A program made the position numbers and the translations under genes. A stretch of DNA of 64,000 nucleotides, from contig OZ287706.1 of the NCBI GenBank assembly GCA_965649825.1, forward strand, positions 806,001 to 870,000, in the 5' to 3' direction. Positions 14,682 through 64,000 of this stretch are shown piece after piece. This stretch comes from Penicillus capitatus. Taxonomy: Eukaryota > Plantae > Chlorophyta. Numbering within the stretch: position 1 is the first letter of the stretch; each line of letters begins with the position of its first letter. The notes beneath the pieces were generated by a model, which made no database searches, was not told where the DNA came from, and saw only the letters and a program-made list of their open reading frames with translations.

Positions 14682-15947
14682 ATGCGTACCAACCTCATTT
14701 GCAGCCCGTGTCTGGCGTGTGTCTGCGCCGTTCTGTTCTTTGCAGTTGTATCGTTCGGTTACACGGAACATGAGGCAGTCACACGGAACGACCTCCTCCT
14801 CGCCAAGGCTTTGAAAAACGGAGAATTCTGCTGTCCTTGCGTTTTGGAGAAAGCCGAGGTGGATCGTCGAACCACTCGCGAAAACTGCTGCCCCTGCGCT
14901 CTTGAACAACGTCTGAAGAAGATTCCGCTCGCACCTCTTCATCGTGCCCGTGCCGTGTACAGCAACGAGGCGAAAGACCCGGCAGTGAAGTCCTGCGAAC
15001 TCATCACCGGCGATCTTCTCTCGTCTCTGCCGAACTGCGTTTCTTTCAAAAGAGGACAAGTGGACTGCTTCTACGTCAACTATGAAACGCAGACGGTCAT
15101 CCACAAGACGATAAAGGACGGTACACCGCAGGAATCAGTCGATAATCAAGCAAAAGTACGCGATGAAGTGATTCCTGTGGCCAAGTCTAGCAACAAATTC
15201 ACCCTCATGACCTTGAACCAGTCGAACCATTTGATGACCAGAATGATCAGAGGCGGTGAATGGACGGAATGGGAGACGATCGAGAATGCCATGGCACTGG
15301 AAGTGCCGTCTGTCTTTATGCGTGGCAGCGGAGGTGTTACCTGCTTCTACCGATCAGTAGACAATTCGCTTTGGTATGTGGACCGTTCGCGCTATGGCAA
15401 ATGGGAACCACCAAAGAAGCTCCAGCTGGAGGGTTTGGTATCACCTCCGACATGCACCGAACGCGGGGATGGCGATGCCGAAGACTGTTTCGCCTTGGCA
15501 TCCGACAACTCTGTGTCGCATGAGATGTGGGTTTTCGGGGGAGAATGGAAAGTACAGCCGGGAGCGGGTGGAATGGGAAAACAGCGCATCTCTGTGACAA
15601 GCTGGGACTACGATCGTGCCGACATCTTCGTCCTTGGCGTCGGCAATCAGCTCATGCACCGAGCCTTTGTGGAAGAGGAGTGGGAGGAATGGGAGGATCT
15701 CGGCGGCAGCTTCGTGTCTGCTCCGGAATGCATTGCAATCGAAGACGAGGCGATACACTGTTTTCTGATCGGTGTCGATCGTACTCTCATGCGCAAGTCG
15801 TTCGTCGACAATTCTTGGTCGGACTGGTTCTCCTCTTCCTATGCCATGATCGAAAAGCCATCATGCGTGGTGACAGGAGGAACGACAATTGCGTGTTACT
15901 CACGCGGATACACCGGACACATGGTCGAGATCGTTTACGAACTCTAA
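14682..15947 (+). CDS. Secreted PLL/DUF346-like beta-propeller (lectin-like) protein, copy 1, intronless
   Basis: 421-aa ORF with signal peptide, two CCPC motifs and blade repeats such as ISVTSWDYDRADIFVLGVGNQLMHR..WEEWEDLGGSFVSAP. Confidence 0.75.
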   Translation: MRTNLICSPCLACVCAVLFFAVVSFGYTEHEAVTRNDLLLAKALKNGEFCCPCVLEKAEVDRRTTRENCCPCALEQRLKKIPLAPLHRARAVYSNEAKDPAVKSCELITGDLLSSLPNCVSFKRGQVDCFYVNYETQTVIHKTIKDGTPQESVDNQAKVRDEVIPVAKSSNKFTLMTLNQSNHLMTRMIRGGEWTEWETIENAMALEVPSVFMRGSGGVTCFYRSVDNSLWYVDRSRYGKWEPPKKLQLEGLVSPPTCTERGDGDAEDCFALASDNSVSHEMWVFGGEWKVQPGAGGMGKQRISVTSWDYDRADIFVLGVGNQLMHRAFVEEEWEEWEDLGGSFVSAPECIAIEDEAIHCFLIGVDRTLMRKSFVDNSWSDWFSSSYAMIEKPSCVVTGGTTIACYSRGYTGHMVEIVYEL

Positions 15948-16076
15948 GTTTTCGATCCATTACGTGCGCGTTTTGTTTTTTTGATTAAGAGATGGGTTTA
16001 TAAGCACTTTGCTGTGCGGGTGTTTGCGGGTGATGTTGTTTGAACAGACGCAAGTCTTTCAAATCGATTCAAGTGT

Positions 16077-17358
16077 TTACAGACGTTCTATCCAGTCCCA
16101 GATCTCTTCGGCCAGTCGCTGTAGATCGCGCGATCGCATGATCTCTGGGAGGATGTCTTGACGGAGAAAAGAGACGGGCTCCCCTCCCAGCATCTCTCCG
16201 TTTCGTCCCTGCAGTAGATCCATGCAGATCTTTCGGAGCTTCGTCTCCTCGTCCTTGGTGACGGAATGGCATCGTGTGGCACGAGAGGTCAGGAAACGGA
16301 CGTAAGCCAACGTCCACTTGCGATAGTCTGTTGGGAACTTCAGCTCGATCGCGTTCATGATTCCCTGTTCCAGATGATGCTTCACATCTGCCTGACTGGC
16401 ATGCAAGGATAATGCATCGAGTTCAATATCGCTCGTCTCATCTAGTCGACAAACAAATCGTTCGCTGTCTTTGAGAATGATCACTGTGATGGCTTACCTG
16501 TATCCATCTGCGCTGCTTGATGACCGGTCTGTCTCTGTGATGGATCTGAAATGAGGGTCCATGCTTCGAGGGAAGTATTGTAGAGATAAGCATGCCCGTC
16601 CGAAAGCATGGCAATTGGCAAGGAGTTGGAGCTGAAGTGGATGGTTGACACTGCACACACAACCACCTTCATTCGGTGAAGGATGATGCTAAGAAAAGAC
16701 CGCACGTTGGGCTTCCTTGCAGAGCGAGCAGACAGAGGCGCGATAGATCGACGGCCTCTTTGAACGGCTCCGAGATCTGTTGGATGCACATCCAGTCCGA
16801 GGTCCGCCAAATGAAGACTCGTTTGGCATCGGCCTGACTCGCGAGGAACTGACCGAGTGGATCCCATGCCACGCCCTTGACCATATTCTTGTGGCCGGTA
16901 ATGATGTGACAGGTCTCTCCCCCTTCGACATCCCAGATGATGATCGCCCCGTCCAGACTGCAACTGGCGAGCATATGTCGACGTGTGGTGGTGCCCCATG
17001 CGACTTCCGAGACGTCGAGCTTCTGCTGATGCCACTTGCGAAATGGGCGCCACGAAGGTTCGTTGAAAGGCACCCATGCGGCAACACTGACAACGCCGTC
17101 CGACCCTCCCGAGGCCAAGAGACGGCCAGTGTGATTGAATCGAACGGAGTTCACAGGCTTCTCGTGAACTTTGATCTCGGCGAGCAGCGAAGTGTCGTTG
17201 GAAGAGGAGAGCGCTTTGGCGAAGCTCCAGACGTTAACGACGCCATCGTCACCGCCGGTCGCAAATGCATTTCCGCGGGGCGAGATATCGATAGAGAAGA
17301 TCGGAACGACGTTTTCCTTCTCCAAGTGCACCGCCCATGTCAACGGCTTAGTAATCAT
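16077..17358 (-). CDS. HIRA: HIRA-like histone chaperone, internally shortened
   Basis: N-terminus PIFSIDISPRGNAFATGGDD, HEKPVNSVRF, VKGVAWDPLGQFLASQADAK; C-terminal Hira-domain motifs LSDGHAYLYN..W, HLEQ..A..LKFPTDYRKWTLAYVRFL, LRKICMDLL. Total span is only about 1.3 kb. Confidence 0.8.
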
Positions 17359-18553
17359 TCTTGTAGCAGATTGACGTAACGCGCACGACAACCAGGAGAG
17401 AATGGAAACGCCGACGAACGCAGACTACTACACGAACTGGGAAGGCAAAGGTGAAGAGCTGCTAGCTGTCTCGCTGAGGTGAGAAGGCGTCGTGCAGGAT
17501 TGGTGAAGCCGGCGCCGCCTCCGGAAGTGCGAGACTGGCCGCAACCCGTCGGACTGACACCGCACGAAGAATACATGATTCATCCTTCGGTCAACAAAGT
17601 CTCCCTGGGGCTCGGCTGGGACGAGTGAGCGCGTGTGATGCCGAATGTTCGAGAGGGATACCGGGTTTCGCTGTAGAGGAGTGGATGTGGATGCCTCTGC
17701 AGCCCTCATTGGTTCCCAGCACGACGTGGTGGACCTCGTCTGGTGGCACAATCTCAAGAGCACATGCAAAAGTGTCAAGCATTCGGGCGATGACACGACA
17801 GGCGAAGGGGGTGGCGATGATGAGATCATCACAGTCGACATAACAGACATTCCGTTGAGGGTGCACCACATCCTCTTCGCCGTCTGCATCTACAGTGACG
17901 GATTCTCCTTCGATCAAGTCCGTCTGCAGCGTCCTATGTGTCCTCTGCACGTCCTTTTCTCTGTGTAGCTGCGCAGAGCGTATGTGAGAATGATGCACGG
18001 GAAGCCAAAGTACAAGGGACACATCATGTGCCAGTTTGAGCTGAACCAGCTGGTCGGTCGAGCGATGTTGATGGGAGTGATGACGAGGAAAGGTGCTTAC
18101 TGGAGCTTCAAGGCACTCGGTATTCCTGCTACGGGCCAGACCATCCAGGACGTCGTACAGGTAAGTGTCTCATTCCTTGTACCTACACGACGGCACCGCC
18201 ATATGTGTTTTTCAGAATCCTGCAAACTTGGAGTTCCTGCAGTCGAGCATCTCCTTTCCGCCACTGCTAAGGAACGTGAGTGTCCGTGTGACGCAGGGGG
18301 CAGAGTTGGCTGCAAAGGATGCCGCCAGATTCGGAAGAGAGGCATCATCTGACCCTTACTTCACTCTGAAGTTTAAGAAGAGTGTTGGTTTTCTGCAGTG
18401 CTATTCGACGATGGGGCAGATTTGGCGCTGAAAAACAGGCCAAAATCGTCAGCGCAGCAGCGGGGTTACGCTATTAGTTGTTAGCAACGCAAAGCGACTT
18501 GATCGACACTGTGAAGAACTCCCTCTAGTTACACCACCCTCCACGTCTCTTTC

Positions 18554-18622
18554 GCCTCGTGGTGTAGCGGTTGGCACACTTGGGGATTTCCCAAGAGGCG
18601 TGGGTTCGAATCCCATCGAGGT
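18554..18622 (+). other. tRNA-like head of the SINE (not a functional tRNA)
   Basis: Cloverleaf folds: GCCTCG/CGAGGT acceptor, GTG/CAC D stem, CTTGG/CCAAG anticodon stem, GTGGG-TTCGAAT-CCCAT T arm. The anticodon loop GGATTTC lacks U33 and purine 37. Confidence 0.75.
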
Positions 18623-18925
18623 CCCGTGCGTCACTCGGGTGATAGTGACAGGTCGGAGGGTTAATCGGCATCTCGCCGCGACGTAATTGGACAAATGCTC
18701 GGAGATTGAAATCTAGACCCCTAGCCGCGGGTTGGAGGGTCACGTCTGGGGAGGTCGACGACGCAAGACTGTCGAGAACGAGACGCCGGAAGACGAGCGA
18801 TTTAATGAACGATGGATGGGTGATAGATGAAAATCGATGAACACTTGAACGGTTAACTAGCGGTGAATGTCGGGTTGTAAAATGCCTCTTGCGAATGCGA
18901 CTGTAAACAAACCACGATTGACACA
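18555..18925 (+). mobile_element. tRNA-derived SINE nested in the solo LTR
   Basis: 13-bp TSD CACGTCTCTTTCG (18542-18554 and 18926-18938); tRNA-like head with A box TGGTGTAGCGGTTGG and B box GGTTCGAATCC; short CA tail; empty site in the related LTR near 52.0 kb. Confidence 0.85.
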
Positions 18926-20385
18926 CACGTCTCTTTCGACCTCTTCGGCATGGACGACCCGTATCTCTCTTTCGCCGCCTTAGTCGGGGAGTGGAAGACT
19001 AAAGTCGCCGGAGTCTTGGCCGGGAGATGGAGGGGCGTCGTGGCTAGATTCATCTTCGTGTTGGCTCATCTCACCAAGCGCAGCGGAAGTCTTGAAGTCA
19101 GATAATGATGGGAAAGAGCTTGGAGGCCGCACCGACAATTTTGCAGAAAGGAGACGACTTGTTACAATCGATGATAGATAGCAAATGTTTGTAAGACAGA
19201 AACGGGGTTTATGCGATGTCCAAAAGATAACAGAAACTCAGGTGTCAAACGAGAGATGATTTATGTGTCCAGACCCTTGCTTAAATACCCAGTCCCTGAA
19301 GTGACGATAGGAAAAACAGATGAACTTCAAGAGTGAGTTCACAATGAGATTCACAATCAGACTAGGAAGTTCAGCATGAAATTCTAGAAGCTTCCCAAGA
19401 ACTTCGCAGGAACTCGCTCCTAGTCAGCATGACTTGTCCGCGACTCAGCGGCGACGGCTCCGTTGCGCAGCCAAGAACGCGAAAAGGCATAAACGACAGA
19501 AGATGCAATCCATTATGTTGTCGTCTCATCACGTTCCCTCAGAATTGCGCCCTTTCTTCACAGACACAATTGGCCCGTAACACCGGAAACTTTAAACCCA
19601 AACTTGCTCCCAAAGTTTTTACTTTGTATGCCTATGTACTATGTTCTTCTTGCGTTTTTTCTTAGTTACGCACACAAGATTCATGTTTTCTGTCGCTTCT
19701 TGGCGACATCTTGATTTCATGCCGTCGCCTTATTGCGCCGCCACATCTTTAGGCTTCTACCACACGCTGCGTCTTCTTCTCAGCGCGTTGACTGTCATTT
19801 CATCACGTCAACTGACTGCCACGGGTTTCTCGTTATTAATGTAATCCAGACTGATCATTCAGGGTTACAGCACTCCTCGTCGCCTCAGACTTCTGGCTCA
19901 AAACTCGACGTCGCCTGCACCTCGCAGGTCATTTGCTGCTCCAAACTCGATGTCGCCGCGAACTTAGCAGCTATCGAATTCCGCCAGCTTCTGAGATTTC
20001 TGGCCAGCGGCTAAGTACCCGCAGATGATAGTGACGTTTTTCCTAGCATTCTGACAATGCACGTCATCCAGACTCGAACCCTGGATATCTGCTCGATCAC
20101 GAGTTCCGCGTCCTACTGCAGACCCGTCTCTCACCCTGCTTTGGTCACTTCGTGACCCTCTCCAGCGCTCTCTTAACCGTCGCTGAATACTTTTTCGTCC
20201 TTTAAGCAATCGGTCTTGACGGCCTTCGAACCGTCGCCAAAAACTTCTTCGCCTGATTACTTAGCGCACCAACAAAGAGAACATTCAAATCAAACTTCGT
20301 CAAGAGGTCGCTGAATCCGACGTGGAATGAAACTGCTTTTAATTTGGGACGCATAAGCGAATCGGAACCGAAGGCTTTGAAGATT

Positions 20386-22061
20386 ATAAAGTAGGTCTTT
20401 CTTACAGCCCTTTTTAATGTTAAACATCAAAGGCGCATCTGTTCTGTATAATGCCGACGATCAGCAGGGCAGCAGATCAGCGTTGGCCAAGCAGGAAAGG
20501 ATGGAAGATGTGAACCTCTGGTGCTATAGACAAACCGATTACTCTCTACTTGTTATCCGGTGTTTCCGCGAGGCGCACTCGTGAAACGAACAAATGGGCG
20601 TATCGGGAGGACCATGTAATCCAGAATCGCGTACGGAGTCTTGCACTCTTCATGAAGCTTCTCGTAGAGTGTCTTCGAGATGAAGACTTTCAGGTTTTTG
20701 CTTGGTAGCCATTCGGGGAGAGGCTGTCCTGCGAGATCTCGTTTCCTGCGATTCAGTCGGTGTGGGGCCGCGAGGTGCGACTCTTGGAGATCGGTAACTG
20801 AGAGGTTCCATCGGCTGCATTTTGTGTTGCGATGGCTTCGATGGTATCTTCAGGGTCAATATCTGTGTCGACGCTGCCGATGACTATCGGGATCTTGTCT
20901 TTGGTGGGCGAGACGTACGGATTGTTGACTGTGAACGTCCCGATATCGTCCAGCTCCAGATCCCATCTGGCACCGGCGCATTCCAGGCAGCGATCAAGGA
21001 CCTGCTCAAATTTCTGGATCAGTTGTGCCCTAATCTGCACGTAGTATCTTCCGCCGTGGTCTGTCCGGATGTCTTCGACGTATTCCTTTAAGTTCTGGAT
21101 CTTTAGCGTTTGTTCCAGGCTGATGCCAAGCTGGCGAAAGGACGGGCGCTCTCCTTTCAGGGTTACTGGGCAGAGCTGGAAGCTGCGTTCGTCACAGCGA
21201 ATTTCGGCCTTGATTGCGTTGGTTTGCTCCCGGATCTCTCGTGCCTGGGTGGTTCGTTGACGCTGGGCGAGGGTCGTGATCTGGGGCTGCTCTGAGGGCA
21301 GGGACTGACGGGCAGCGTCGCGGTACGAGCGGTTGACTTCTCGAACGGTGTCGGCCGCAGAAGGTGGTGTCACGTGGGCCATTGGAGCTGGGGGTGTTGT
21401 AGCGAACGAGACCATGGACTTGTGAAATCCAAGACAGGTTCCTATCTCCTCAAGACGAGTGGCGATTCCCAGGAGCGTTTCTCGGTTTTCGGGTGGAACG
21501 GATCCAGTGGCGCATGCCAGATGAGCCTGCGTAGTGGCGAGGTCTTGGGCGAGTGCTTCCAGGAGATCTGAAGGGGTAACTTTTTCCTTGTATCGGCAGA
21601 TCTGTGAGAGACAGGAAGACTTAGCGTGCGGATCATAGGTGGGACCTTCTGGGGCAAGTAGGAGCGAGTCTCTAGCGCTCTCGTGGTGTCGGACGAGTCG
21701 GAGCTGCACGGCATCTCGCCTTTCATGGGCTGCCAGGTAGGCTCGGATTCTCAGGATGAGCTGTGCGGCGTCCATGGAAGCAGCGTCCTGTGTGGAACAC
21801 GCCCGGACTGCGGTGTTCACGAGTATGAGCTCAGCCTTGCTCATGTTTTCCAGAACCTCTGGCGCGACCGGCGCAGGTCGCGCCGGTATCGGACCGTGTT
21901 TGCGGCCTGAGCAACCGCCGTGCGCACTGGGTCCGAGGCGGTGTTAGGACCGCTAGACTGAGAGCCTGACGGTTGCATCGTTCGTTTTCGCGTTAGCGGG
22001 CACCGTCGTTCAGCAAGGGTTTTTAAAACAGCGGAACGAAAGTGTCGACGAGAGAATTTTT
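20386..22061 (-). mobile_element. ORF1-only non-LTR-derived element (1.68 kb)
   Basis: 15-bp TSD AAGGCTTTGAAGATT at 20371-20385 and 22062-22076; contains a single gag/ORF1-like ORF; no RT, no poly-A, no TIRs. Confidence 0.75.
20753..21844 (-). CDS. LINE ORF1/gag-like protein, frameshifted near 20810
   Basis: Intronless 363-aa ORF with IPIVIGSVDTDIDPEDTIEAI; continues in another frame as RWNLSV..RLNRRK..ILDYMVLPIRPFV, resembling pre-zinc-knuckle ORF1 segments. Confidence 0.55.
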   Translation of the reverse strand: MSKAELILVNTAVRACSTQDAASMDAAQLILRIRAYLAAHERRDAVQLRLVRHHESARDSLLLAPEGPTYDPHAKSSCLSQICRYKEKVTPSDLLEALAQDLATTQAHLACATGSVPPENRETLLGIATRLEEIGTCLGFHKSMVSFATTPPAPMAHVTPPSAADTVREVNRSYRDAARQSLPSEQPQITTLAQRQRTTQAREIREQTNAIKAEIRCDERSFQLCPVTLKGERPSFRQLGISLEQTLKIQNLKEYVEDIRTDHGGRYYVQIRAQLIQKFEQVLDRCLECAGARWDLELDDIGTFTVNNPYVSPTKDKIPIVIGSVDTDIDPEDTIEAIATQNAADGTSQLPISKSRTSRPHTD

Positions 22062-22405
22062 AAGGCTTTGAAGATTGAAGTGTACGATCGCGATCCTATC
22101 TCGAGGGACGATTTCATGGGAGCCGTTCGGATTCCTGCAAGTGCCCTGTGCAACACCGGCCCAGGAACACACTATTTTTGGTTTGATTTGGGTCCTGGAA
22201 AGAAAGAAGATCGACAGACCACCGTCTCGGGGAGGATTCTGGTGTCCGTGACGGCAGAGGATTCATGAATTCTGTCGTGCGACACCACATTCGTCCGTCG
22301 ACTCCCCACGCAAACGACACTCATTAAAGTCTTTTATTTTCTGCTTTTACGGGCGATCGACGTCTGTGCTCATGGTCATTGTCGTAACGAATAGATATTT
22401 TGTGA

Positions 22406-24672
<2,267 letters not shown>

Positions 24673-51302: not shown

Positions 51303-51340
51303 GCCTGCGTCAGAACCTGAACGATACGAGACATAGTGTC

Positions 51341-53560: not shown

Positions 53561-54813
53561 CTAGATGAGCCATTCCACTTCCAACTGAATCTGCCCGGCA
53601 TGTCGCTCGCCGTCTTCTGAGTCTGGGGCATTCACATTGAACCACGAGTTATAATTTTCCTCTGCAGCAACCCAAAGCGTGCGTTCTGAAACTGAGAGGC
53701 TGCCCATGGGATCATCAGGTGTCAAATGATCCCTGTCGATCAGTTTTATGGTTAGCTGGTCCATTCCATTTGCATCTAAAGGTCCCAGGTCAAAGAAAGT
53801 CTCCTTCTCCCACTTCGGCGTCAACGTTCTTGTTTTGACAGATGACGAATAGCTTAGTCCCCGAAAACGCATTTGGTAGTACGGATCCGACGTGCCCCTC
53901 CTTCCGATTTTGTTGTCTTTCGGGAGAAGTTCCTGTCCCTCTACCACCCGAGCACGTGCATGATTAGCCCTAGAGGACGTCGATCCAAGAGATGGGGGTG
54001 CTTCAACGTCGTCCTGCAGGGAAGGCAGATGTTAGAACAGCACTCTAGCAGGAAATCTCTACAGTTGAATTCGGCTCTGTGAGGTTTTCATTGCCAGATT
54101 TAGTCAGTGGACGATAATACCAACCATCTGTTGTACTCATCATCATCACGATCCACGCATCATTTCTTTTTAGGGGTTTAGACGTAGAATCCCAGAGACA
54201 CCCTGTCTGCTGATATTCTTCTCCATTCAGTTCCAGATGCACTTCCACAGGTGGAATCTAAGACCAACAGATCGAGAAGATCCTTGTTAAAGGAGACAGA
54301 CGTCTGTGAGTGTTTCAAATGGGGGCTGGCATTTTATGGAGAATAAGATGAATTGAGGATTGGATAAAGCAGCAGGCATTCTGAGATGAATTGTCTGAAC
54401 TGCGTTTCGGTCTTGGTCTTGCTCTTCCTGTGTACACGAGTTACTTTCCCATAAGGTCGTGTTTCCCTTTTTGCCTAAAAGGGCTTTCATCGTTTTGCCG
54501 TCCTTCATGAACATTCTAGCCGGAAAGGGCGCTTCCCCGACGCTGTGACACAGCCGTTAGCATTGCCCGTAGCTCTTATTCGCGCACTTGTTGTCCGGGC
54601 CTTTACATTTCAGACTCAGGCACACCTCTCGTACACTGTTATCCATGCGACGCCATCCCGTGTCCTGTCTTGGTGGCCTTGGTACGTCGTGTTCGTTTCC
54701 TATAGGTCCACACATTACTCACTGTCGACAAGGATACCTAACGGCCGACCAAATCGACGGTTTTTAATTCTGTTCGCACGGGGAAATGGTTCCGTATCAA
54801 AGTCGTCTTCCAT
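53561..54813 (-). CDS. TerD-like + C2 domain protein, copy 3 (highly degenerate TerD)
   Basis: MDNSVREVCLSL matches the family N-terminal motif; QFILFSI; WIVMMMSTTDGWYYRPL; C2 exon VVEGQELLPKD..SDPYYQM..TLTPKWE..IDRDHLTPDDPMG. Confidence 0.7.
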
Positions 54814-55690
54814 AGTGCTATCGGCTATATCCCAAATCTGCGCTTCTCTGGTTCCAATTCTTCGCGTCGCAGCAATTGATGTAAATAGATGATAGTCTCT
54901 GCTTAAATCTAAGAGCAGATGCCATCCACCATCAGCCTAATTGACTTCATCAAACTACATGACCCATAGAATTAACTTCTGAGTAACCGCAAAGGTTGAA
55001 GCTGCTGCCGTGAACAGGCAGGGAATCGATGGAGAAGCTCTGAAACTCGAGAGTTTACCGTCTGTGTCCAGAATGTCTTGAAACCTTCGACCGTTTTGAA
55101 ACTGGGATGAGCTACACTCTTCATGCACGATTGGTGCATGCCGGAAGTTACTGAAACGCTGTCCAGTAGTTGGTTGCTCGTTGTCGACGCATGCATCATC
55201 TCAGCAGCAGTGCGAGACGACGAGTGTGTCTTCTATGCGCGAATGCACCTTCACAGAAACGTCGTTGGAGATTCGGCGTACGATTCGCATTGCAAACAAC
55301 AACGGGACTCTTAAAGTCGGCGCAACATCGAGCTTCCTGCTTCGTTCGCCTTTGATGCGAACGAGAGAACAGTTTTTGGCATACCATCGACGTTGCCGTA
55401 CGATGAATCCATAACAGACAAAACTGCCCTGCAAAAATGTGGTGTCTCTGAAGAATCATTAAATCGCTGCAACACGCAAAAAGGCGAAACGATCCTTTAT
55501 GGTGCAAAACCAGCTGAGAGATCGAAGGAAAAGTAAAAGATGCAACACACACTGCAAGTTGACCGATGAATCGCTCTTGCTGAAAGGCAAGACGCATTCG
55601 TGTCGGCGTTGGGCAAAGTATAAAAGAGCAACACTGCGTGATAACGCATCGCCAGTGCCGATTTGGAAGAGAGGGATGCGGATGCCACTC

Positions 55691-57547
55691 TCAGGTTTCC
55701 AGAACAGATGCCGCCTTATAGGCAGAGTATTCAGAGTCTCCGGACTCTGCCTCACACTGAGGAAGTGGCGGACAGGTGTGTTCCATGCTTCTTCGACGCC
55801 TCCTACGATTTGCAAAGTCGCCCAGCTCGGTGAACGCTTCGAAGTCGAATTCGAGCGCTTCAGACTGAGAGTAAGGCTCTGGGCAATCTTCGATCGTCTG
55901 CGGCTCTTCTGTGTTCTGTGCGCATGCTGGATGGTCGTCTGGTGGTGGGCCAGCCCATCCATAGAGCTCTCCCATGTAACTCTGTCTGTTCAAATGAGCC
56001 ATCAGATGAAAATCTGCCTTCTTCTGAAAGACAAGGATAAAATCTGAGCCGCCAAAGAGGAATGTTCCCAGTTCGTCGCCTTTGTTCACGTGATCTCCCA
56101 CTTCAACAGTAAAATTGATTCCTGCCACCTGTGCCATTCCGATAGGCATCGCCACAACGTAACCGATCTTCGGATTGTCCGCTTCGATGGTGATCAGACC
56201 TATTTAAGGGACATAATTCGAAGAATTGCATGATCTGCTGGGAATACCTCTCTGTTGGACGAAGTGATATCCAGCCTCGTCCTCTGCATATGGCATGATA
56301 ATGTGTTGTCCAGTTGTCGTGACGTTGAGGTAGAACTGTCCGGCGATCACTCTTCGCTCGACGATCTTTCCAGAAACCGGGGAATGCCAGCGATGATAAT
56401 TGTAGGTGCTCAAGAAGGAATGCGTGAATTTGCCACCTGCGAAGCAATCTCTGTAGTGACTAAGGAACAACAGCTCTTGAATGGACCACAGGGCTCCCTT
56501 CACATTGATGACTTCGTGTGGATCGCCAGTATCGATCACTGTCGTACTGCTGATGTTGTATGAGGCGACAAAAGTCGAATCTGCCGGAAACACAATGGCG
56601 TCTGGCTCACACGTGCAGTTGATCGGTCGAACGCCAGGTTTCAGATGTCGAGCAAAGTACTCATTGAAAGTTCGGTAACCGCCTTCGGGTACGATATAGT
56701 CATTCCAGCAGAACAGCACGTCTGTTTTGAACGTCTCGACGCATAACGCCGAGTGGTTTGTGTCTAAGTACGTGCCCCATGCAACCGCATATTCCCTGGT
56801 CCATGCGGACAAAAATGACAACTGCTGTTGCGTGGTTCCACACATAGTCGTGCCGGGAACGACTGGACTTTGTAGTTCCATAAGGCTGGTCATGTTGAGC
56901 ACAAGATAGAAAGTACTCAGTGCGTTGTATACGTTTCTTGTGTTGCCGCTTTGGTATGGGGGTGTCATGAGCAGCTGATCCGCATATCTGAGGAAAGTCT
57001 CCGTCGAGTTGATACACTTGGCCGTCTTCACGTTCAGCGAAATCAGCTCTTCGATGGCATCATCGAATGCAACTCGGAGGGTGTCGTTTGCCAGGAGTTC
57101 GTCTGCGAGTTTCTGCACAACGGGCTGGTACACCTCCTACGATCACCACCGATCATCATGGCGTCGACGCGCCGCCGGCTAAGTCATTATTACCTTTGGC
57201 GGCGTCACGCATGTACAGTCTTTCTGAAAGATACGGTGACCGAGTCCACATAGACAATCGTCGTCTTTTTCGTCTTTCGTCTTTTCGCGCTCAGGGAGAG
57301 GGAGGATGACGCAGTGCGGCCTCTCGGCTGGGTAGAAGAAAACGCAAGCGGGATCGCAAATGTCTTCTTCGACTCTCCTCGCGTATTTTCCTTTCGCCAG
57401 ATGCGGTCTGCGGATCTCCTTAGGGACCTTGTCAATATGGCCGTATGCGGAAAGGCCTTTAATCTTGTTTTCCGTTTCGTCGGCCTTGACGTATGATATG
57501 GCTGCCGTTAAGAACAGCACACAGGTTATCCATTTGCTGTTAACCAT
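55691..57547 (-). CDS. Signal-peptide-bearing phosphatidylserine decarboxylase-like proenzyme
   Basis: Signal peptide; YRTFNEYFARHLKPGVRP, VFPADS, FLSTYNYHRWHSPVSG, IGMAQV, KGDELGTFLFGGSD (self-cleavage Ser); many N-x-S/T sequons. Confidence 0.85.
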
Positions 57548-58480
57548 GGTTGAAAGGCCAAGTGCCAGCGAAGGGTAACGAAACCACAGACGCGCGAAGA
57601 ACTTTCAGAGCCAGCAGTTAGCGCCGGCATTTATCAGATCCGAGCGATGCGACGTTTTGAGATCGAGAATCTCGAGCTGCTACTACAAGAATTCTTATGG
57701 TATGATCAGGGAAATTCGTAGCGCATGGATAAGTTCGAAAAGGAAAGAGAGCCCGAGGACTGAAATTCTTCTCCGAAATAGACGATCCCAGGAGACAAAA
57801 CACAAGTCTGCATTCGAACGAGCATCACCGACCTCCCATCTGGATTGAATGGATATCGAATTGAGAAGACCGGGCTTGGTATGAGCAGCAAACCAATTCA
57901 GCGCCGTCTGAATGTTCACTGGCGAAGCTTCAGCGGATACCGATTTCGAACAAGTATCGGGGATATCGACGAGACAAGCAACAAATCAGAATGTACGCCT
58001 TCTTCGAGCTGGAGAGAGCTTTCGCGCCGAAGAAAGCGATCGCCGACAAACACACTATTCAGTTTGGAGGGAGCTGATGACAAAGGAGTACCTCTGTCAT
58101 GCATTCACATCCAAACCGTGTCCTGTTCTTATTCGATATACCTTTCCAATCTCTTCGAATGATCATTTGTGTACTGTCGTACTCTGAGTTTTTGCACTGT
58201 ATCTTGATCTTGTAGCTTGTATTTGTGAGGATGCACATTCTCTGAATCCACTTTAGCATTCTTCTTTACGACGCAAGGTCATTTGTGTCGTCGGTCCACT
58301 CGCGCAAAGGTTTGATGAATATGGCACGCAATCGAGCTCCACATGTCAGCAGAGAAAAGATAGATGATTTCTTCTTGCGCCCGACTCGGCCGCCGTTTCG
58401 CAATGACTGTGGACAAATCGTATACGAGACGGTGCTGTGTTCGGTAGAATCAGAGGCAAAATGAAGCAATCATTCTAATT

Positions 58481-58675
58481 CAATATGTCCTGTACGAGGG
58501 TAGAACCCTCGAGATTCCGAGAAAGGGAGCAATGGAGTTGCTAACAGGACGCTCAACTTGCAGAAGTGCTCAAAATATCCACAGAAGAGTCATCACTGAA
58601 GACGCAATATGTCCTGTGCGAGGGTAGAACCCTCGAGATTCCGAGAAAGGGAGCAATGGAGTTGCTAACAGGACG
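58481..58675. repeat. 71-bp direct repeat x2 (58481-58551, 58605-58675) with internal inverted repeats
   Basis: Copies differ at one base; each contains GTCCTGT..ACAGGAC, CGAGGGT-AGA-ACCCTCG and AGCAA-TGGAG-TTGCT. Confidence 0.85.
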
Positions 58676-59067
58676 ACCCTCACAACGTCGCACTTAAAGA
58701 AAGGCAACTCACACCAACTGAGCATAGCCAATTGAACAATTTCAAGCGGCACATAGAATTCTTCAAGCGCATTTCCAAACGACGTGCCAGATTCCAGCCC
58801 TTGCTGAGCACTCTGCCAGTGACAGGGCCGCAAAATGCCGTTCATCATCGTCAGGTCTCCAAATATCAACATCTGTTCAGCACGCAACCATTACATCTTG
58901 TGTAGTCGCCCTTTGTCGCAAGGCATAAGATATGTGACCCTCTTTGTGGCCACGTCTCTTTGACACACACAGTTTTTCCGCATTTCTGGGATGCGTTGTT
59001 CGTTTGTTCGTCATCACGTTGCTTCATCTTTATGTCCGATGCGTGTTGATGAGCATTTCTTCGCATC

Positions 59068-61487
59068 ATGTCCAGTCGACAGCGGCGTCAGTTTGAACGA
59101 CAAAAAGATTTCCTCGCAGGGTCACCCGACAGCGATGAAGCGACAGACGATTCTGCCAAGAATTCCTCTCCTATCACTGCGCCTTCCACCAATCCCTACG
59201 AGCTCTTGGGGGAACTCGTAGAAAACGGCTCGGCCTCTGAACACGTATGTACAGATGCATTTCAGCCACATGACAGCCGACGATGGCACAACCGTATCTC
59301 TGACTAGGAAACAGAGGATGTCGTGCATCATCATCCTCCAGAAGAAGAGACGAGTCAACGACATGAGACTGATACTGGGAGAAAGAAGAAAAGAAAAGGC
59401 AAGAAGAAAAAGAAAGCCGCTGTCGACGAGGATGCCGAGTTGGATCGTCTGGTACACGAGATCGAAAATGCCAAAGCAAGAAGACAGTTTCCAGTGAAGG
59501 CGACTGACATGTGATGGTCAGGTTTCGCAACCGGCAACAGATGCCACAGCCGCCCAGCCGTCCGCCGCATCGAGCAAGGACGCCAGAGATGCGATCTTCA
59601 CTCTTTCGCTCAAATCTCTAAAAGGCGACGAAGAGGTGGGGGCTTATATCTGCTGTTTCGAGAATGCGATGTTCGGCAATGTGGCTTAGCTGAATCGGAT
59701 GTTCGGAGCACATGTCGTGGCAGGTGTCGAGGCAGAACTGCAGAGAAAGCGACGACAGGAAGAAGGACGGAGAGGACTGGGCGATGTACGACGACGATTT
59801 ATGCGTCGTTTCCTTCTGACAGATCCTCAACCGGAATGGAGTGCCAGAGAGTCAGAACTCTCCATGATCTTCAAAGGCATCACAAAGCACAGCCATGCCA
59901 GAATCTCAATGCTCAGGGGACGACGTTGTAGGTGGAGAGCTTTTTGAGTACGTACCCAGTGAGGCCTACGCAAAAACACACGATCTTTTCGTGGAATGCC
60001 AAGACGTGGGAGATCCCAATGTACTGAGCGCATTCATTGCAAAACATCCATTTCATGTGGAGGCATTGTTGGCAATGCACGATGTCTTAAGCGCCACAGG
60101 TTCCCACCTGCATGCAGACGAGTGCCTCAACAGGTCTGTGCCGTCAGCGACCGGCATCTAACAGCCCTTCTCTTTTCGCAGAGCTTTGTTCGCACTGGAG
60201 GCTGTTTGGCACAGAAGCTTCTCTCCAACTTCAGGAAAATGTCACCTCAGCTTCGAGGTCTTCTTCCTCAGAGCATGACATTGTGGCCTTCAGCAGCTTT
60301 GTTGAAGGTGGAGTCCAATCGCCATCTGTTTCGGGCGCTGTTCATGCACGTACAGCGATTGAGCAGAAGAGGATGTCTGAAGACAGCATTCGAATGTTGC
60401 AAATTTCTGTTGAGTCTAGACACCACAGATCCTCTCGGAACACTCTGCATGATCGACTACCTTGCTATTCGAGCTGGTGCTTGCTTCCTCTGACACTGCT
60501 GCCTCAATGAGATTATCTGGTGCCTGTATCTTCAGGTCAGTTTGGATTCGTGCAGAGACTTGTCGAAGCCATTCCGGATGGTCCTTCCCTTGCAGTGCGC
60601 CCCGGTTTTGCTTTCTCCTTTGCCCTGTGCCACTTCAAACAAGGAAAACGTAAGACAGCACGAGTGATATGCCCATTGGAAGAACGCCTGTTCTTGGCAG
60701 ACGAAGAATCGATGGACAGTCTCGTCCAAGCTGTGCTGATGTACCCCTTGGCATTGAATCGTCTGATAGGGAAGCTGAAACAGAGCGGTACACGACTGGA
60801 TCAACAATGGCAGACAATCTTGCAGCATCCTTTCTTTGCCAAAGCGACAGAAGACCGAAGCGCCTCGTTGGGTCATCTGGTGAGCAATGGACGGCCTTAG
60901 GTATCTCGTGGCATGCTTGAGTTTTCTTTGCAGATCAATCTGTTTGTGGAAAGGCATCACACACTGTACAAATCTCAAGACATCTTGAATTGGCTGGTCG
61001 ACGGAGTGAAGATGGCGCATGATTGTGTTCTGAAGCGTTCGATGTTCCAAGGTGTCACCGTTGAGGACTGGACTTGCGTAAGGACAGCAGCTTTTCCTCC
61101 GGACGATCAGAATCATTTTGGGTACATACATCATTCTTATCGTTATCCTATCACGCGATGTTGTGTCCTGCAGTCATCTGCATCTGTACGATTTCTCGGA
61201 TGATATCAGCAGATTGCCGGAAGATGTTCTCCGCGGAGATGGGGCCGAGGATGCCAGAGCGGATCTCGAGAGACGAATGGCACAGGAGATTGAACAGCAC
61301 GGTCATGTCCACGATCGAGATGGCGCAGAAGCATCACCTGTTCTGTGCTGTAGGGGGGATCGATGGAATCGTGCATTTGAGGCAAGATGATCTCAGAAAT
61401 GCGAATCCATTGATCGTGTTTCTGAGGTCATTGCTTCCGTGGGTACAAACGGACGAAAGAAATCCACACCCTCCAAATGATGCTTAA
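59068..61487 (+). CDS. TCF25: TCF25 / Rqc1 (ribosome quality control) homolog
   Basis: MSSRQRR, KHPFHVEALL, NRHLFRALF..LSRRGCLKTAFECCKFLLSLD..DPLG..IDYLAIRA, C-terminal NPLIVFLRSLLPW. Confidence 0.92.
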
Positions 61488-62032
61488 ATGCTGTTGACAT
61501 GTAATGCTGATTTCGAAGGATCTACGGCAACATCTGCATCTCCTAGCTGACATCCCCAAATCCGCGACGCCGCTGGCGACGATCGCTCCGCAGCCTAAAC
61601 AGGAAGGAAAGCATACACGATGGCGAGAAAAGAACAACAGACGCAGAATAGAAGCGAAGGGTTGTCGCACTTTCCCGATCTAGTACTTTAAAAATTGCTA
61701 CTTGGAGACTCGCCTCGTTCTCTTGATATAAGTATGCAATCGAATCTGGCACATAATGCTCTCAGGCCTTATTTCCTTCCCAGCTGTTGACATCTCAGGT
61801 GCGTTTGACCATGTGCAAAGCAGCCATACGCGCGTAGTGGATGAGGATTCGATGACGTATCGAAGTGCTGCGATGTAGTGAAACTAGAGACTTAATAATG
61901 AAGTTCATGCTCTCCCTGTGGGAAAGACAGAAGCGTCATTGTTGGAAATTGAATCATCTAGCAAGAGATAAAAACCGACAACTTTAATGATTGTTGTTCA
62001 AGGCATTTCGTGCATCCGCATCCGAGCCTTCT

Positions 62033-64000
62033 TCAGATCCACTTCTTCTTCTTGTAGCAGAAAGATTCGTTTCCGTCTTCGGCCATGTGCCAGCAACAGT
62101 CGCTGTTGAAGCAGTCCTCTTCCGTGATGTCGTCCTCCCCACACTTCTCTTTCTTGATAACGGCGCAGTGCAGCACGTGCATCATGGCTTCCTTTTCAGA
62201 TCCAGAGTAGGTGGCCATCATTGTCGTCTTCTTAATTGTGTGTGTCTCCTTTCCAATAGAAGATGCATCACCCTTTCCGCCATGACTTGCAGCTTCTGGT
62301 TCTTCCTTCTCTGAAGTGCCTTCCTCCGTTACCGTCTTGCTCGTCGTCGACTGCACAGTCGTCGTCTCAGACGAGGAACCGCCGGCTTCAGATTCGACCT
62401 CCTTCTCCGAGCTGCCTATCGCGACACCTTCCTTCTTGCCGACAACCTCGGCGCCTTCCTCCGTTACCGTCTTGCTCGTCGTCGACTGCACGGTCGTCGT
62501 CGTCGTCTCAGACGAAGAACCGCCGGCTTCAGATTCGACCTCCTTCTCCGAGCTGCCTTTCGCGACGCCTTCCTCCGTTACCGTCTTGCTCGTCGTCGAG
62601 TGCTTTGCAGTTGTGGATTTGGAAGCGTCTCCGCTAGAAGTCGAGGACTTAACCTCCGTTCCTTCTTTTGCGCTGACTGTTTCAACACCTTCCAAAACTT
62701 CAGAAGCTACGCCCTCGATCTCAGCTTTCTTTTCAGTACTGCTGCTGCTGCCTTCTTCAACCCCCTTCGCTTCTTCCGAACCTTCTTCTGTTGTCTCGCC
62801 CTCTGTGCTGCTGCTGATCGTTGTTTTCTTCGTTGTGGTCGTTTCAGAAGAATAGTCGTGCTCATGCAATCCACCATGTTTAGAATGGCCACCAGCTGCA
62901 CTGGATTCGTCTTCAGTTTTTACGTCGACAACCTCCGCAGTCTTTTCAGTCTCAGACGTGCTCGTCGTGGAATGCTCCGTCGAGTCTCCACCGATCTCCC
63001 CCTTGGTCACTTTTTCGGAACTGCCTTCTACGACGTCTTCTTTCTCCGCGACGACTTTTCCGGCTTTTTCCGTCGCCGTCTTGCTCGCCGTCTTTGTCGT
63101 CTCGGACTCCGTTTCAAGTTTCGCGTCAGCACCGGATTCGCCCGAGACAGATTCGGCTTCCTTCTCACTTTCAGTTTTATGCGAACCAACACTCTCCTCT
63201 TTCGTCGTCTTCGTGCTGACCTCATACTTACAGTAATCTTCACCGCAAGAAGTTTCATCTTTTTTCGCCGAAGAAACCTCGACTTCATGAATTTCAGTCT
63301 CCGAAGACGTCACCGACTCTTTGGATTCATCCTCGATAACTTCAACTCCAACGAATTGCTCCTCCAGGGTTTCTTTTGCTTTTTCTTTGCTCTCGCATCC
63401 CAAGCATTTCTCTGAGCCAACCTTCTTCGTGACGCCTCCGGAATGACGTCCACGTCGTATTGCTGTTTCGTCTCCATGTGCCTTTGCAGCGTACTCTTTC
63501 GTCGCTTCTGTCTTCTTGGCAGTAGCGGACGACACGACTTCATCCAGAATATCGTCTTCCTCGTCGACGATCACTGCACTTGCACCTCCAACCGATTCTC
63601 TTGTCTCTTCTTTCTCTTTACGCGATTTTGCCTGTCCTCCTTCGATCTGATGATGGACGGATGGTTCCGTGCTACTTACAGGAATAAACTCCGCATCATC
63701 GTCTGTGGAATCAAACGCGTCAGCTGACGTCTCTGAGGGCACCGCAACTCTATATTCTTCTAGGAGCTCCTCGACGTAATCTCCACCCACAACGTCATCC
63801 TCTGGCTTCTCCTCCACCTTGGTCTTCTCGTACGGAGATGGCTCTGGCTTCTCCTCCACCTTGGTCTTCTCGTGCGGAGATGGCTCTGGCTTCTCCTCCA
63901 CCTTGGTCTTCTCGTACGGAGATGGCTCTGGCTTCTCCTCCACCTTGGTCTTCTCGTGCGGAGATGGCTCTGGCTTCTCCTCCACCTTGGTCTTCTCGTG
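62033..64000 (-). CDS. Trefoil/mucin-like protein copy 3, C-terminal part (gene continues beyond the window)
   Basis: 650-aa open frame: EEKPEPSP(H/Y)EKTKV repeats, long E/S/T/K-rich region, terminal trefoil-like CG..ITEEDC...CCW.....FCY. Confidence 0.85.
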   Translation of the reverse strand, partial: HEKTKVEEKPEPSPHEKTKVEEKPEPSPYEKTKVEEKPEPSPHEKTKVEEKPEPSPYEKTKVEEKPEDDVVGGDYVEELLEEYRVAVPSETSADAFDSTDDDAEFIPVSSTEPSVHHQIEGGQAKSRKEKEETRESVGGASAVIVDEEDDILDEVVSSATAKKTEATKEYAAKAHGDETAIRRGRHSGGVTKKVGSEKCLGCESKEKAKETLEEQFVGVEVIEDESKESVTSSETEIHEVEVSSAKKDETSCGEDYCKYEVSTKTTKEESVGSHKTESEKEAESVSGESGADAKLETESETTKTASKTATEKAGKVVAEKEDVVEGSSEKVTKGEIGGDSTEHSTTSTSETEKTAEVVDVKTEDESSAAGGHSKHGGLHEHDYSSETTTTKKTTISSSTEGETTEEGSEEAKGVEEGSSSSTEKKAEIEGVASEVLEGVETVSAKEGTEVKSSTSSGDASKSTTAKHSTTSKTVTEEGVAKGSSEKEVESEAGGSSSETTTTTVQSTTSKTVTEEGAEVVGKKEGVAIGSSEKEVESEAGGSSSETTTVQSTTSKTVTEEGTSEKEEPEAASHGGKGDASSIGKETHTIKKTTMMATYSGSEKEAMMHVLHCAVIKKEKCGEDDITEEDCFNSDCCWHMAEDGNESFCYKKKKWI
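62330..62600 (-). repeat. Internal Thr/Ser-rich coding repeats (STTSKTVTEEG..GSSEKEVESEAGGSSSETTT)
   Basis: Two to three near-identical blocks visible in both DNA and protein. Confidence 0.75.
63800..64000 (-). repeat. 42-bp coding repeat (EEKPEPSP[H/Y]EKTKV), running off the window end
   Basis: ctggcttctcctccaccttggtcttctcgt recurs every 42 nt. Confidence 0.9.

Follow-up and report, generated by a model that had tools for sequence, protein, structure and literature searches.

Large palindromes with gene conversion between their arms are known from the ampliconic regions of the human Y chromosome, and in plastids the single-copy region between the inverted repeats flip-flops. Among algal lectins, those with an established part in the aggregation of Bryopsis protoplasts fall into the F-type and H-type families. 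The DNA analyzed here, a stretch of 64,000 nucleotides from Penicillus capitatus (hereafter the window), had been predicted to hold three triplicated, mirror-oriented families (PLL-like lectin propellers, TerD-C2 proteins and trefoil proteins) forming a wound-sealing or surface-defence module built by inverted duplications. Our joint reading, which we hold with considerable confidence, is that the locus is a nuclear palindrome of ~70 kb with a two-layer history of duplication and a decaying arm in the window, and that the adjacency of the three families is historical rather than modular.

Architecture of the palindrome

Of this palindrome, the window holds the left arm and the spacer in full, but only 0.9 kb of the right arm, which begins at TFF3 and lies mostly past position 64000; the arms are ~16–18 kb each. 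The right arm was read from the near-identical public contig ctg340479 (contig A). The features of the window are the following.

4366–10316, + strand: trypsin-like serine protease exons (4366–5635; Pfam Trypsin 9e-37), then an ankyrin-repeat array (5662–10316; Ank 3e-21)
9638–27658: palindrome left arm (blastn against inverted L001, the right arm of the same 954-kb contig)
11341–14361, − strand: Rev1-like Y-family DNA polymerase (Pfam BRCT, IMS, HhH, UBM)
14682–15947, + strand: PLL1, single exon; PLL-type seven-bladed propeller, signal-peptide-looking N-terminus, region with two CCPC motifs
16080–17424, − strand: HIRA remnant, WD40 region short of ~1.18 kb at 16741–16747
17402–22268, + strand: TerD-C2-1, multi-exon with 40–55-nt GT-AG introns; C2 exon broken by two insertions
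18383–20274: insertion 1 in that C2 exon; 1,892 bp, TGTTGG...CCAACA ends, 5-bp target duplication AAGAG, solo-LTR-like
20386–22061: insertion 2 in that C2 exon; 1,676 bp, 15-bp target duplication AAGGCTTTGAAGATT
22406–24400, + strand: CDK-like Ser/Thr protein kinase, multi-exon (Pfam Pkinase 4e-52 on joined exons; 3' limit approximate)
25010–27541, + strand: TFF1; signal-peptide-looking N-terminus, trefoil-pair repeats, PEPSPYEK repeats, acidic region
27659–63088: palindrome spacer, 35.4 kb, sequence without a second copy between the arms (self-blastn)
32429–33630, + strand: TFF2; signal-peptide-looking N-terminus, two trefoil domains, acidic/Pro-rich linker, Cys-containing C-terminus
36850–37950, − strand: TerD-C2-2; good C2 and degenerate TerD-like half, Ca2+-ligand residues replaced in both halves
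39548–40942, − strand: PLL2; probable ATG 40804, orthologue P0005 carries PF26607
45493–46794, − strand: PLL3; probable ATG 46731, orthologues P0003 and P0004
49449–51817, − strand: tandem GNAT acetyltransferase pair (49449–49979 and 51341–51817; Pfam), 45% amino acid identity to each other
53564–54031, − strand: C2-3; family HMM 7e-21 at positions 210–349 only, Pfam C2 5e-12
55694–57604, − strand: PS-decarboxylase-like (PSD-like) gene (Pfam PS_Dcarbxylase 3e-37); N-terminus MVNSKWITCVLFLTAAISYVKA signal-peptide-looking by eye
62033–64000, − strand: TFF3, 650-aa ORF; 5' end outside the window
63089–64000: inner end of the right arm; inverted match of 26761–27658 with 63981–63089 at 89%, remainder beyond the window

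Genes of the left arm are ordered Rev1-like polymerase (−), PLL1 (+), HIRA remnant (−), TerD-C2-1 (+), kinase (+) and TFF1 (+), and the spacer contains TFF2, a biotin ligase gene, TerD-C2-2, PLL2, PLL3, the two GNAT genes, C2-3, the PSD-like gene, Tcf25 and the unique 3' part of TFF3. Family copies left of ~34 kb are all on the + strand and those to the right of it all on the − strand, exactly as had been claimed, and the protease and PS-decarboxylase-like genes said to share the window are both there. The Trypsin-Ank sequences flank the left arm on its outer side, and they likewise adjoin the left arm in contig ctg303784.

Self-blastn of the window, the comparison for inverted segmental homology proposed with the original prediction, found the inverted arm match listed above; homology of the TFF1 and TFF3 arms stops at 27658/63089, and the only other inverted matches are those of PLL1 with PLL2 and PLL3 (69–71% at the nucleotide level). 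When the window is compared with L001 by blastn, arm-to-arm identity is 97.4–98.7% over 9698–25653 and ~88% over 25679–27658. Contig A is collinear with the window through loci L009 and L003 (98.1–99.97%); the two differ by a few indels, of 243 bp, ~994 bp and a single 356-bp repeat unit. Positions 62328–64000 equal L001 21266–19594 at 100%, and the 4,607-bp gap between L001 and L003 is the exact window distance from 57721 to 62328. Beyond the window end, L001 continues with the kinase, TerD-C2, HIRA and PLL (P0001) genes and then IMS, so that the right arm adds a fourth PLL gene to the locus, along with an intact TerD-C2 and a HIRA that still holds the ~1.18 kb lost from the window copy. Window PLL1 (P0068) and its right-arm counterpart (P0001, 94% amino acid identity) lie on one contig of 954,164 bp.

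Neither the right arm (L001) nor the sister species (L002, L010, L011) has insertion 1, which contains a tRNA-like sequence (18553–18625). Insertion 2 is absent from L001 and L002, and its ORF (20753–21844, − strand) has no Pfam match. The ~1.18 kb missing from the HIRA remnant is present in L001, L002, L010 and L011; the HIRA ORF is 753 aa long in L002, L010 and L011, and the L001 gene was called as several ORFs, the largest of 544 aa.

The three gene families

The three PLL-like propellers are present as predicted; their protein identity is 55–62%, and they have orthologues with PF26607 (Beta-prop_PLL). PLL1–3 are under purifying selection, with omega between 0.12 and 0.34 (PLL1, 0.22 when compared with the sister species and 0.34 with the right-arm copy; PLL2, 0.12; PLL3, 0.34). 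The best 22 PDB matches of the PLL1 AlphaFold model are all Photorhabdus PLL/PHL lectins (TM 0.72–0.80, ~21% identity). Close relatives of the window PLLs were found only within this algal genus, and all those among 5.8 billion clustered proteins map to this single locus, in four contigs; this confinement is non-random and is explained by local duplication.

For the TerD-C2 family the prediction of three copies held for C2, where all three have a Pfam domain of one family, and clear TerD was found only in copy 1. The exons of TerD-C2-1 cover positions 9–352 of the family HMM, and with both insertions taken out it matches Pfam TerD (2e-29) and C2 (1e-18). TerD-C2-2 matches the C2 part of the family HMM at 4e-36 and the TerD parts weakly (4e-7 and 5e-6), and Pfam detects only C2, and no TerD, in it. 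The segment that holds TerD-C2-2 (34176–38249) has no blastn match in sister-species loci L004, L005 and L006, which cover the TFF2–PLL2 interval, and L012 gave no TerD-C2 HMM hit. Upstream of C2-3 the family HMM detects no TerD, even at E<=1000, in the window and two related genomes. Intact TerD-C2 (copy 1 without its insertions, and the right-arm copy) retains the GDDxTGEGxGDDE motif of TerD together with the SDPY and DxD...DD motifs of C2, and judging from its sequence is probably a Ca2+-dependent membrane-binding protein. Its closest named relatives with full-length TerD and C2 are from Bryopsis sp. KO-2023 (48–51%) and Ostreobium quekettii (47%); elsewhere the fusion is named in Bryopsis and Ostreobium only, and it also occurs in sequences from the environment, from transcriptomes and from EukProt, of which one is only 30% identical. 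A siphonous green alga of Bryopsidales type as the host fits these relatives.

All three trefoil genes have Pfam Trefoil matches (TFF1, 3e-18; TFF2, 4e-17; TFF3, 1.6e-4, which at 21.9 bits is just over the cut-off), and similarity to animal TFFs is distant only, at 27–31%. TFF1 contains a 356-bp unit in 3.2 perfect copies (25590–26731; TRF). TFF3 combines PEPSP(H/Y)EK repeats and an acidic region with a mucin-like stretch of ~400 aa, rich in Ser/Thr/Glu, and carries a trefoil domain at its C-terminus; it is 88% identical in amino acids to the downstream part of TFF1. TFF1 is truncated and frameshifted relative to TFF3 and has frameshifting indels against the right arm. TFF2 has orthologues P0061 and P0062 and a dN/dS of 0.42.

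The three families are lineage-restricted here, the PLL and trefoil/mucin-like proteins being secreted-looking and TerD-C2 cytosolic-looking; signal peptides of the PLL, TFF and PSD-like proteins were judged by eye. From their domains, PLL1–3 and the trefoil proteins probably work outside the cell, in wall, mucilage or surface defence, the former as a sugar-binding lectin and the latter as heavily glycosylated proteins.

Origin of the mirrored arrangement

The same palindrome is present in the sister species, with its spacer flipped: its arms, L010 and L011, are inverted, share 98.0% identity and have their PLL genes ~64 kb apart, and the spacer locus L012 (ctg303784, a 1.1-Mb contig) is reversed relative to the Trypsin-Ank flank when compared with the window. 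The GNAT pair is kept in that species, and window positions 55310–58362 (the PSD-like region) have no match in its locus L004. Since the spacer with PLL2, PLL3 and C2-3 is flipped there, the mirror orientation cannot count as conserved, and the mirrored strands follow from the palindrome architecture and the present orientation of the spacer. The idea of construction by inverted duplications survives in that an inverted duplication shapes the locus, but this duplication differs from the one pictured, the right arm being mostly outside the window.

Arms are 97–98% identical within a genome and ~83% between species (dS 0.089 between arms, 0.48–0.49 between species), an identity attributable to recent duplication or to arm-to-arm gene conversion. 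Among PLL1, PLL2 and PLL3, dS exceeds 1, and the C2 copies are 30–37% identical; old duplication and subsequent divergence separate PLL1 from PLL2/3, and the C2 copies from one another, and the locus is a dynamic region with local duplications. We infer an old layer, in which local duplication would have made PLL1/2/3 and the C2 copies, and a young layer, a large inverted duplication of the polymerase-PLL-HIRA-TerD-C2-kinase-TFF block. Recombination between the inverted arms would be a natural mechanism for the spacer flip, and the window-arm copy is decaying, through the HIRA deletion, the splitting of TerD-C2-1 by two mobile elements and the truncation of TFF1, its right-arm counterpart being intact.

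It is unlikely that the palindrome arose recently and independently in each species rather than being ancestral and homogenized by gene conversion. Arms far closer within (98% at the nucleotide level) than between species (dS ~0.48), and outer boundaries that differ (window 9638, against ~11354 in ctg303784 coordinates), speak for separate events; however, both species duplicate the same block, with the same inversion, spacer genes and Trypsin-Ank flank, which makes two such events improbable. We are doubtful that PLL1/TerD-C2-1 (+) and TerD-C2-2/PLL2 (−) go back to a single PLL-TerD-C2 pair, duplicated in inverted form in an older, small event. PLL is upstream of TerD-C2 on the same strand, 1.3–1.5 kb away, in both pairs, but HIRA separates only the first pair, TerD-C2-2 and the biotin-ligase gene occupy a 4-kb segment missing from the sister species, the C2 copies are only ~35% identical, and PLL3 and C2-3 are in reverse relative order. 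That the inverted repeat is an assembly artefact is scarcely credible: inverted repeats and perfect tandem repeats (25590–26731) are hard to assemble, and the window and contig A disagree on the number of 356-bp units, but the arms differ by 2–3%, two insertions and a 1.18-kb deletion, and a second species, sampled independently, shows the structure again on a 1.1-Mb contig.

The co-retained, co-regulated wound-sealing or surface-defence module, in which TerD-C2 would sense Ca2+ influx and PLLs would cross-link trefoil-mucins into a plug, draws support from PLL and TFF N-termini that resemble signal peptides, canonical acidic Ca2+ motifs in both domains of intact TerD-C2, purifying selection on the PLL genes and linkage of the three families in two species; in addition, Bryopsidales lectin sets are lineage-specific and O. 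quekettii is without the Bryopsis BPL lectins, which leaves room for another lectin type. We nevertheless find the module quite improbable, and that part of the original prediction was not supported, since TerD-C2-1 is split, TerD-C2-2 is without Ca2+ ligands and missing in the sister species, C2-3 is without TerD, TFF1 is truncated, and unrelated housekeeping genes (HIRA, Rev1-like polymerase, CDKL-like kinase, biotin ligase, Tcf25) lie among the families and have been duplicated along with them. The synteny looked for in related algae extends to the sister species, where the three families are together, but not to Bryopsis and Ostreobium, where neither PLL nor trefoil genes neighbour the TerD-C2 loci. 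Known aggregation lectins are not PLL-type, and no common upstream 7- or 8-mers were found, in what is a weak test. Adjacency of the three families would reflect duplication history rather than selection for a functional module. Retention of the PLL, TerD-C2 and TFF cluster in two species at dS ~0.5 is compatible with some selective linkage, and a shared function is conceivable.

Comparison with described systems

Like the Photorhabdus PLL/PHL lectins (PDB 5C9L, 5MXE, 6RFZ, 8Q83), the algal PLLs are predicted seven-bladed propellers with a repeated W..W..LGG blade motif; unlike them, they are encoded in a eukaryotic nuclear genome, have a signal-peptide-looking N-terminus and a low-confidence N-terminal region of ~100 aa with two CCPC motifs, and bind sugar by prediction only. 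They resemble Bryopsis BPL-1/bryohealin (F-type) and BPL-3/4 (H-type) in being secreted-looking, lineage-specific and expanded by local duplication, but differ from these aggregation lectins in fold and family, and their wound role is conjectural. Pfam matches and canonical acidic Ca2+ motifs place TerD-C2 with the bacterial TerD Ca2+-binding and eukaryotic C2 Ca2+/phospholipid-binding proteins; unlike in either, both domains are fused in one protein of ~355 aa, and window copies 2 and 3 are degenerate or without TerD. The trefoil proteins share with animal trefoil factors and trefoil-bearing mucins the Pfam Trefoil domain and its CG...GCCW/F...PWCF cysteine pattern, and with the mucins the joining, in TFF3, of trefoil domains to a long Ser/Thr-rich region; they differ from animal trefoil factors in their algal host, their PEPSPYEK repeats and the amplification of trefoil pairs as a 356-bp exon-plus-intron unit.

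Compared with human Y palindromes and plastid inverted repeats, this is an autosomal-type nuclear locus with one arm visibly decaying, for which gene conversion is a candidate process and spacer flipping is read from the comparison of two species. Like theirs, its arms (here ~16–18 kb) are inverted and more alike within the genome (here 97–98% identical) than between species (here ~83%), and, as in the plastid flip-flop, its spacer occurs in both orientations across the two species.

Three gene families in the window

The window is eukaryote-like, with about 50% G+C, short ORFs and GT-AG introns of 40-55 nt. Comparison of all of its stop-to-stop ORFs with each other, together with Pfam scans, recovered the three families named in the original prediction (PLL-type propellers, trefoil proteins and C2 proteins) as well as the trypsin-like protease (4366-5635) and the PS-decarboxylase-like gene (55694-57604) that it had placed among them; the strands are also as described there, with left copies on the plus strand and right copies on the minus strand, and as an observation it was mostly correct.

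Members of the three families in the window (coordinates, strand, description)
PLL1: 14682-15947, plus, PLL propeller gene, single exon
TerD-C2-1 (copy 1): 17402-22268, plus, family profile covers the whole protein
TFF1: about 25010-27541, plus, trefoil gene
TFF2: 32429-33630, plus, trefoil gene
TerD-C2-2 (copy 2): 36850-37950, minus, good C2 domain, weak TerD half (family HMM E about 1e-6)
PLL2: 39548-40942, minus, PLL propeller gene, single exon
PLL3: 45493-46794, minus, PLL propeller gene, single exon
C2-3 (copy 3): 53564-54031, minus, C2 domain alone
TFF3: 62033 to beyond 64000, minus, trefoil gene

The three PLL proteins are mutually 55-62% identical. A precomputed annotation places PF26607 (Beta-prop_PLL) on seven PLL proteins (P0001-P0007), which include 94-100% identical orthologues of PLL1, PLL2 and PLL3; our local Pfam scan did not return PF26607, even for P0001, and gave a sub-threshold DUF346 only. 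PLL1 was modelled with AlphaFold (AF2) from an alignment of 10 sequences; the model contains a confident propeller from residue ~100 on (pLDDT ~85), and confidence is low for the N-terminal 96 residues, where a signal-peptide-like stretch precedes two CCPC motifs. When this model was compared with the PDB by Foldseek, the best 22 matches were all Photorhabdus PLL/PHL/PLL2-5 lectins (E 7e-17 to 3e-14, target-normalised TM 0.72-0.80, about 21% identity), and the predicted fold is a seven-bladed propeller closest to the solved PLL/PHL structures. Close relatives are few: among 5.8 billion clustered proteins just seven word-sharing relatives of PLL1 were found, all from metagenome assemblies, and phmmer, run exhaustively on 1.84 billion cluster representatives, yielded 3,773 remote relatives, no more than two clusters being at 50% identity or above, both from this algal genus. 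The PLL genes are uninterrupted single ORFs, and TerD-C2-1 and the kinase gene are split by many short introns; the single ORFs, taken with the mostly non-algal remote relatives, invite the question whether these genes arose long ago by horizontal transfer or as a retro-copy.

All three TFF proteins score above the Pfam Trefoil (PF00088) cut-off of 21 bits (65.7, 62.2 and 21.9 bits for TFF1, TFF2 and TFF3), and the six-cysteine pattern CG..GCCW..PWC is visible in their sequences. TFF3 has ~400 aa rich in S/T/E and can be called mucin-like by composition; TFF1 is frameshifted and has neither this Ser/Thr-rich stretch nor the trefoil domain with which TFF3 ends. Signal-peptide-like N-termini suggest that PLL1-3 and the TFF proteins are probably extracellular. 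Within TFF1 (25590-26731) a 356-bp unit is repeated 3.2 times without a mismatch, one unit more than in a near-identical public contig (ctg340479 from ERZ25074695; 954,164 bp). As 356 is not divisible by 3 and the open frame changes from one unit to the next, each unit probably consists of an exon for two trefoil domains plus a short intron.

For the TerD-C2 family, a profile built from 12 full-length homologues was searched against the window. Pfam TerD (PF02342) is above cut-off in copy 1 (102.7 bits) and was not found in copy 2, and no TerD part was found upstream of C2-3 in the window, the public contig or the sister species by the family HMM with filters off at E up to 1000. The C2 domain (PF00168) is above cut-off in all three (67.5 bits in copy 1, 54-57 in copy 2 and 46 in copy 3). 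By eye, the acidic Ca2+-binding motif of TerD, GDxxTGEGxGDDE, reads SGDDTTGEGGGDDE in copy 1 and is lost in copy 2, where we read HHQAEGKRQRNGKAGE (GDDxTGEGxGDDE to QAEGKRQRNGKAGE); likewise, the Ca2+-ligand aspartates of C2 loops 1 and 3 are retained as SDPY and DRD...DD in copies 1 and 3, and copy 2 has THPY for SDPY and HHH...NDD for DRD...DD. Copy 2 thus appears, on inspection by eye, to have had the acidic Ca2+ ligands replaced in both domains. Intact TerD-C2 is without a signal peptide and its Ca2+ motifs are preserved, so that it could plausibly bind membranes in a Ca2+-dependent manner.

The only named full-length TerD-C2 relatives are from Bryopsis sp. KO-2023 (BSKO_12967 and BSKO_12968, 48-51%) and Ostreobium quekettii (47%); the query also matches unnamed EukProt, JGI and Logan sequences at up to 63% identity, and the next matches are bacterial TerD proteins, to the TerD half only. 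These relatives identify the host as a siphonous green alga of Bryopsidales type. A Blastocystis-like protist, considered as an alternative host, was rejected in view of the 40-55-nt GT-AG introns and of these Bryopsidales relatives. Our literature search found no paper connecting TerD, C2 and algae, and TerD, C2 domains and trefoil go unmentioned in the Bryopsis and Halimeda genome papers. For Bryopsis sp. KO-2023, a cell-biological toolbox is described in the genome paper.

Several other features of the window deserve mention. Downstream of the trypsin-like exons, and on their strand, come ~4.6 kb of ankyrin repeats (4366-10316 for the pair). The left arm of the sister species has this pair at its flank too, and the two may form a single gene with an unusual protease-ankyrin combination. 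The PS-decarboxylase-like gene has a signal-peptide-like N-terminus and a weak PSDC N-domain match, and it may encode, in place of a membrane-lipid enzyme, a decarboxylase that is secreted or specific to the lineage. The stretch that separates the two GNAT genes contains a perfect direct repeat of 147 bp (50307-50453 and 51156-51302), and ~994 bp here (50309-51303) is missing from the otherwise 99% identical public contig; this stretch looks like a recent local duplication. ORFs at 28-31 kb gave no match in the Pfam scan.

Palindromic organisation of the locus

The public contig carries segments that match the window in two ways. One of its loci (L009) aligns to window 22480-43882 without inversion (98.1-99.9%), and another (L003) matches 35241-57721. 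A third (L001) matches window 9.6-26 kb at 97-98%, and its far end is window 62328-64000 in reverse, at 100%. The gap between L003 and L001 is 4,607 bp, exactly the distance from window position 57721 to 62328, and this contig encodes both the window's PLL1 protein (P0068) and P0001, to which it is 94% identical. Together the L009 and L003 matches, the gap and the co-location of the two proteins indicate collinearity of the contig with the window in its entirety, and therefore that L001 repeats the polymerase-PLL-HIRA-TerD-C2-kinase-TFF block in inverted form; this second copy starts at TFF3 and extends ~15 kb past the window end. We had considered that L001 might be the left-arm orthologue in a close relative that differed by a 37-kb inversion; this was rejected, as L009 is collinear and L001 is the right arm on the same contig. 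As assembled, then, the locus is a palindrome with the following parts:

Left arm: 9638-27658
Spacer: 27659-63088
Right arm: from 63089 outward

It follows that the locus has four PLL, four C2-family and four trefoil genes. The idea of inverted duplications put forward in the original prediction holds in spirit, in that a palindrome exists, but the architecture is other than the one pictured; of the arms, a self dot-plot of the window shows the inner ends only (26761-27658 against 63981-63089, 89%).

A relative with ~70-84% nucleotide identity to the window (sample ERZ26696514, here the sister species) has a comparable arrangement. Its 1.1-Mb contig carries two PLL1-type genes on opposite strands ~64 kb apart, its arms are 98.0% identical over at least 14.6 kb, and the outer flank of its left arm is trypsin-ankyrin as in the window. 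Its spacer (L012) is reversed relative to that flank, and reads from the left arm GNATs (plus), PLL3 (plus), PLL2 (plus), TFF2 (minus) and PSME4 (plus); this difference in spacer orientation is seen between species only. Thus the pattern of left copies on plus and right copies on minus results from one arm plus the present spacer orientation, and is not a conserved design. In both genomes inverted arms flank a spacer and are more alike within the genome than orthologous arms are between genomes: dS is 0.089 between arms, as against 0.48-0.49 between species. These values point to an ancestral palindrome whose arms have been homogenised by gene conversion; parallel recent duplications in each species are compatible with the same values, and we regard them as the less probable explanation.

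Gene content of the spacer differs between the species. The 4-kb segment 34176-38249, with a biotin-protein-ligase-like gene (plus) and TerD-C2-2 (minus), is species-specific at this position and missing from the sister-species spacer locus, and was either inserted in the window's species or deleted in the sister species. Similarly, window 55310-58362 has no counterpart at the same position, and the PS-decarboxylase-like gene is missing from the sister-species locus.

Decay and constraint in the arms

Defects in the left arm were judged relative to the right arm and the sister species. Left-arm HIRA has a 1.18-kb deletion in its WD40 region (at 16741-16747); the right arm and every arm of the sister species still have the missing stretch, and in the window's species it survives in the right-arm copy only. 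The C2 exon of TerD-C2-1 is interrupted by two insertions:

Insertion 1: 1,892 bp, TGTTGG...CCAACA ends, 5-bp target duplication
Insertion 2: 1,676 bp, 15-bp target duplication

Insertion 1 contains a tRNA-like sequence at 18553-18625 (ARAGORN: tRNA-Asn, odd anticodon ATT), and its 19047-19352 is 68% identical to spacer 52100-52409 over ~310 bp; the two observations suggest a dispersed repeat family. The ORF of insertion 2 gave no Pfam match. The sister species shows a similar contrast: its left-arm TerD-C2 gene has the C2 part divided between two frames (L010 14666-15180), its right-arm gene has it in one ORF (L011 14397-15176), and decay of the left-arm copy may be under way independently in the two species. 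PLL1 is intact, with a dN/dS of 0.34 between arms, and dN/dS of PLL1-3 between species is 0.12-0.34, which indicates that the lectin-like genes are under constraint.

The wound-module question

The original prediction proposed that the PLL, TFF and TerD-C2 genes form a co-retained, possibly co-regulated module for wound sealing or extracellular defence, a hypothesis that the locus suggests at most faintly. Several observations speak against a dedicated module: housekeeping genes are interleaved and co-duplicated with the three families, degeneration affects four of the nine listed copies, TerD-C2-2 is missing in the sister species, and no 7- or 8-mer is common to at least five of seven upstream regions (a comparison of low power). 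Synteny in related algae, which such a module might have been expected to show, did not extend to the other families: the Bryopsis locus consists of two head-to-head TerD-C2 genes beside LSM and BTB-Kelch genes, the Ostreobium TerD-C2 locus has none of the other families, and neither has PLL, trefoil or HIRA genes within ±10 kb. In addition, the lectins for which aggregation of Bryopsis cytoplasm has been shown are, according to the Bryopsis literature, F-type and H-type and lineage-specific; the Halimeda genome paper likewise lists other families.

A joint reading can still be formulated, although we consider it very improbable. In the window's Ostreobium-like lineage, from which the Bryopsis BPL lectins may be absent, secreted PLL-type lectins and trefoil-mucin glycoproteins would form a lectin-glycoprotein gel when the cell ruptures, TerD-C2 proteins would serve as the cytosolic Ca2+ trigger for membrane resealing, and the palindrome would hold the dosage and sequence of these genes uniform via gene conversion. 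By itself the locus does not reveal a wound-healing gene cluster; it is a palindromic region, shaped by local duplication and restless in evolutionary terms, with new algal members of known protein families. Of these, the TerD-C2 fusion gives a specific, testable candidate for membrane events triggered by Ca2+ in giant coenocytic cells. The locus also documents a conserved nuclear palindrome in a green alga of siphonous type, whose arms are nearly identical and whose spacer is flipped between species, and hence a useful case in which to study gene conversion and the turnover of structure in algal genomes, themselves poorly known. Finally, PLL-type propellers, known mainly from bacteria, and trefoil-mucin-like proteins, known mainly from animals, both exist in this alga, each as a small, fast-evolving, secreted-looking family.
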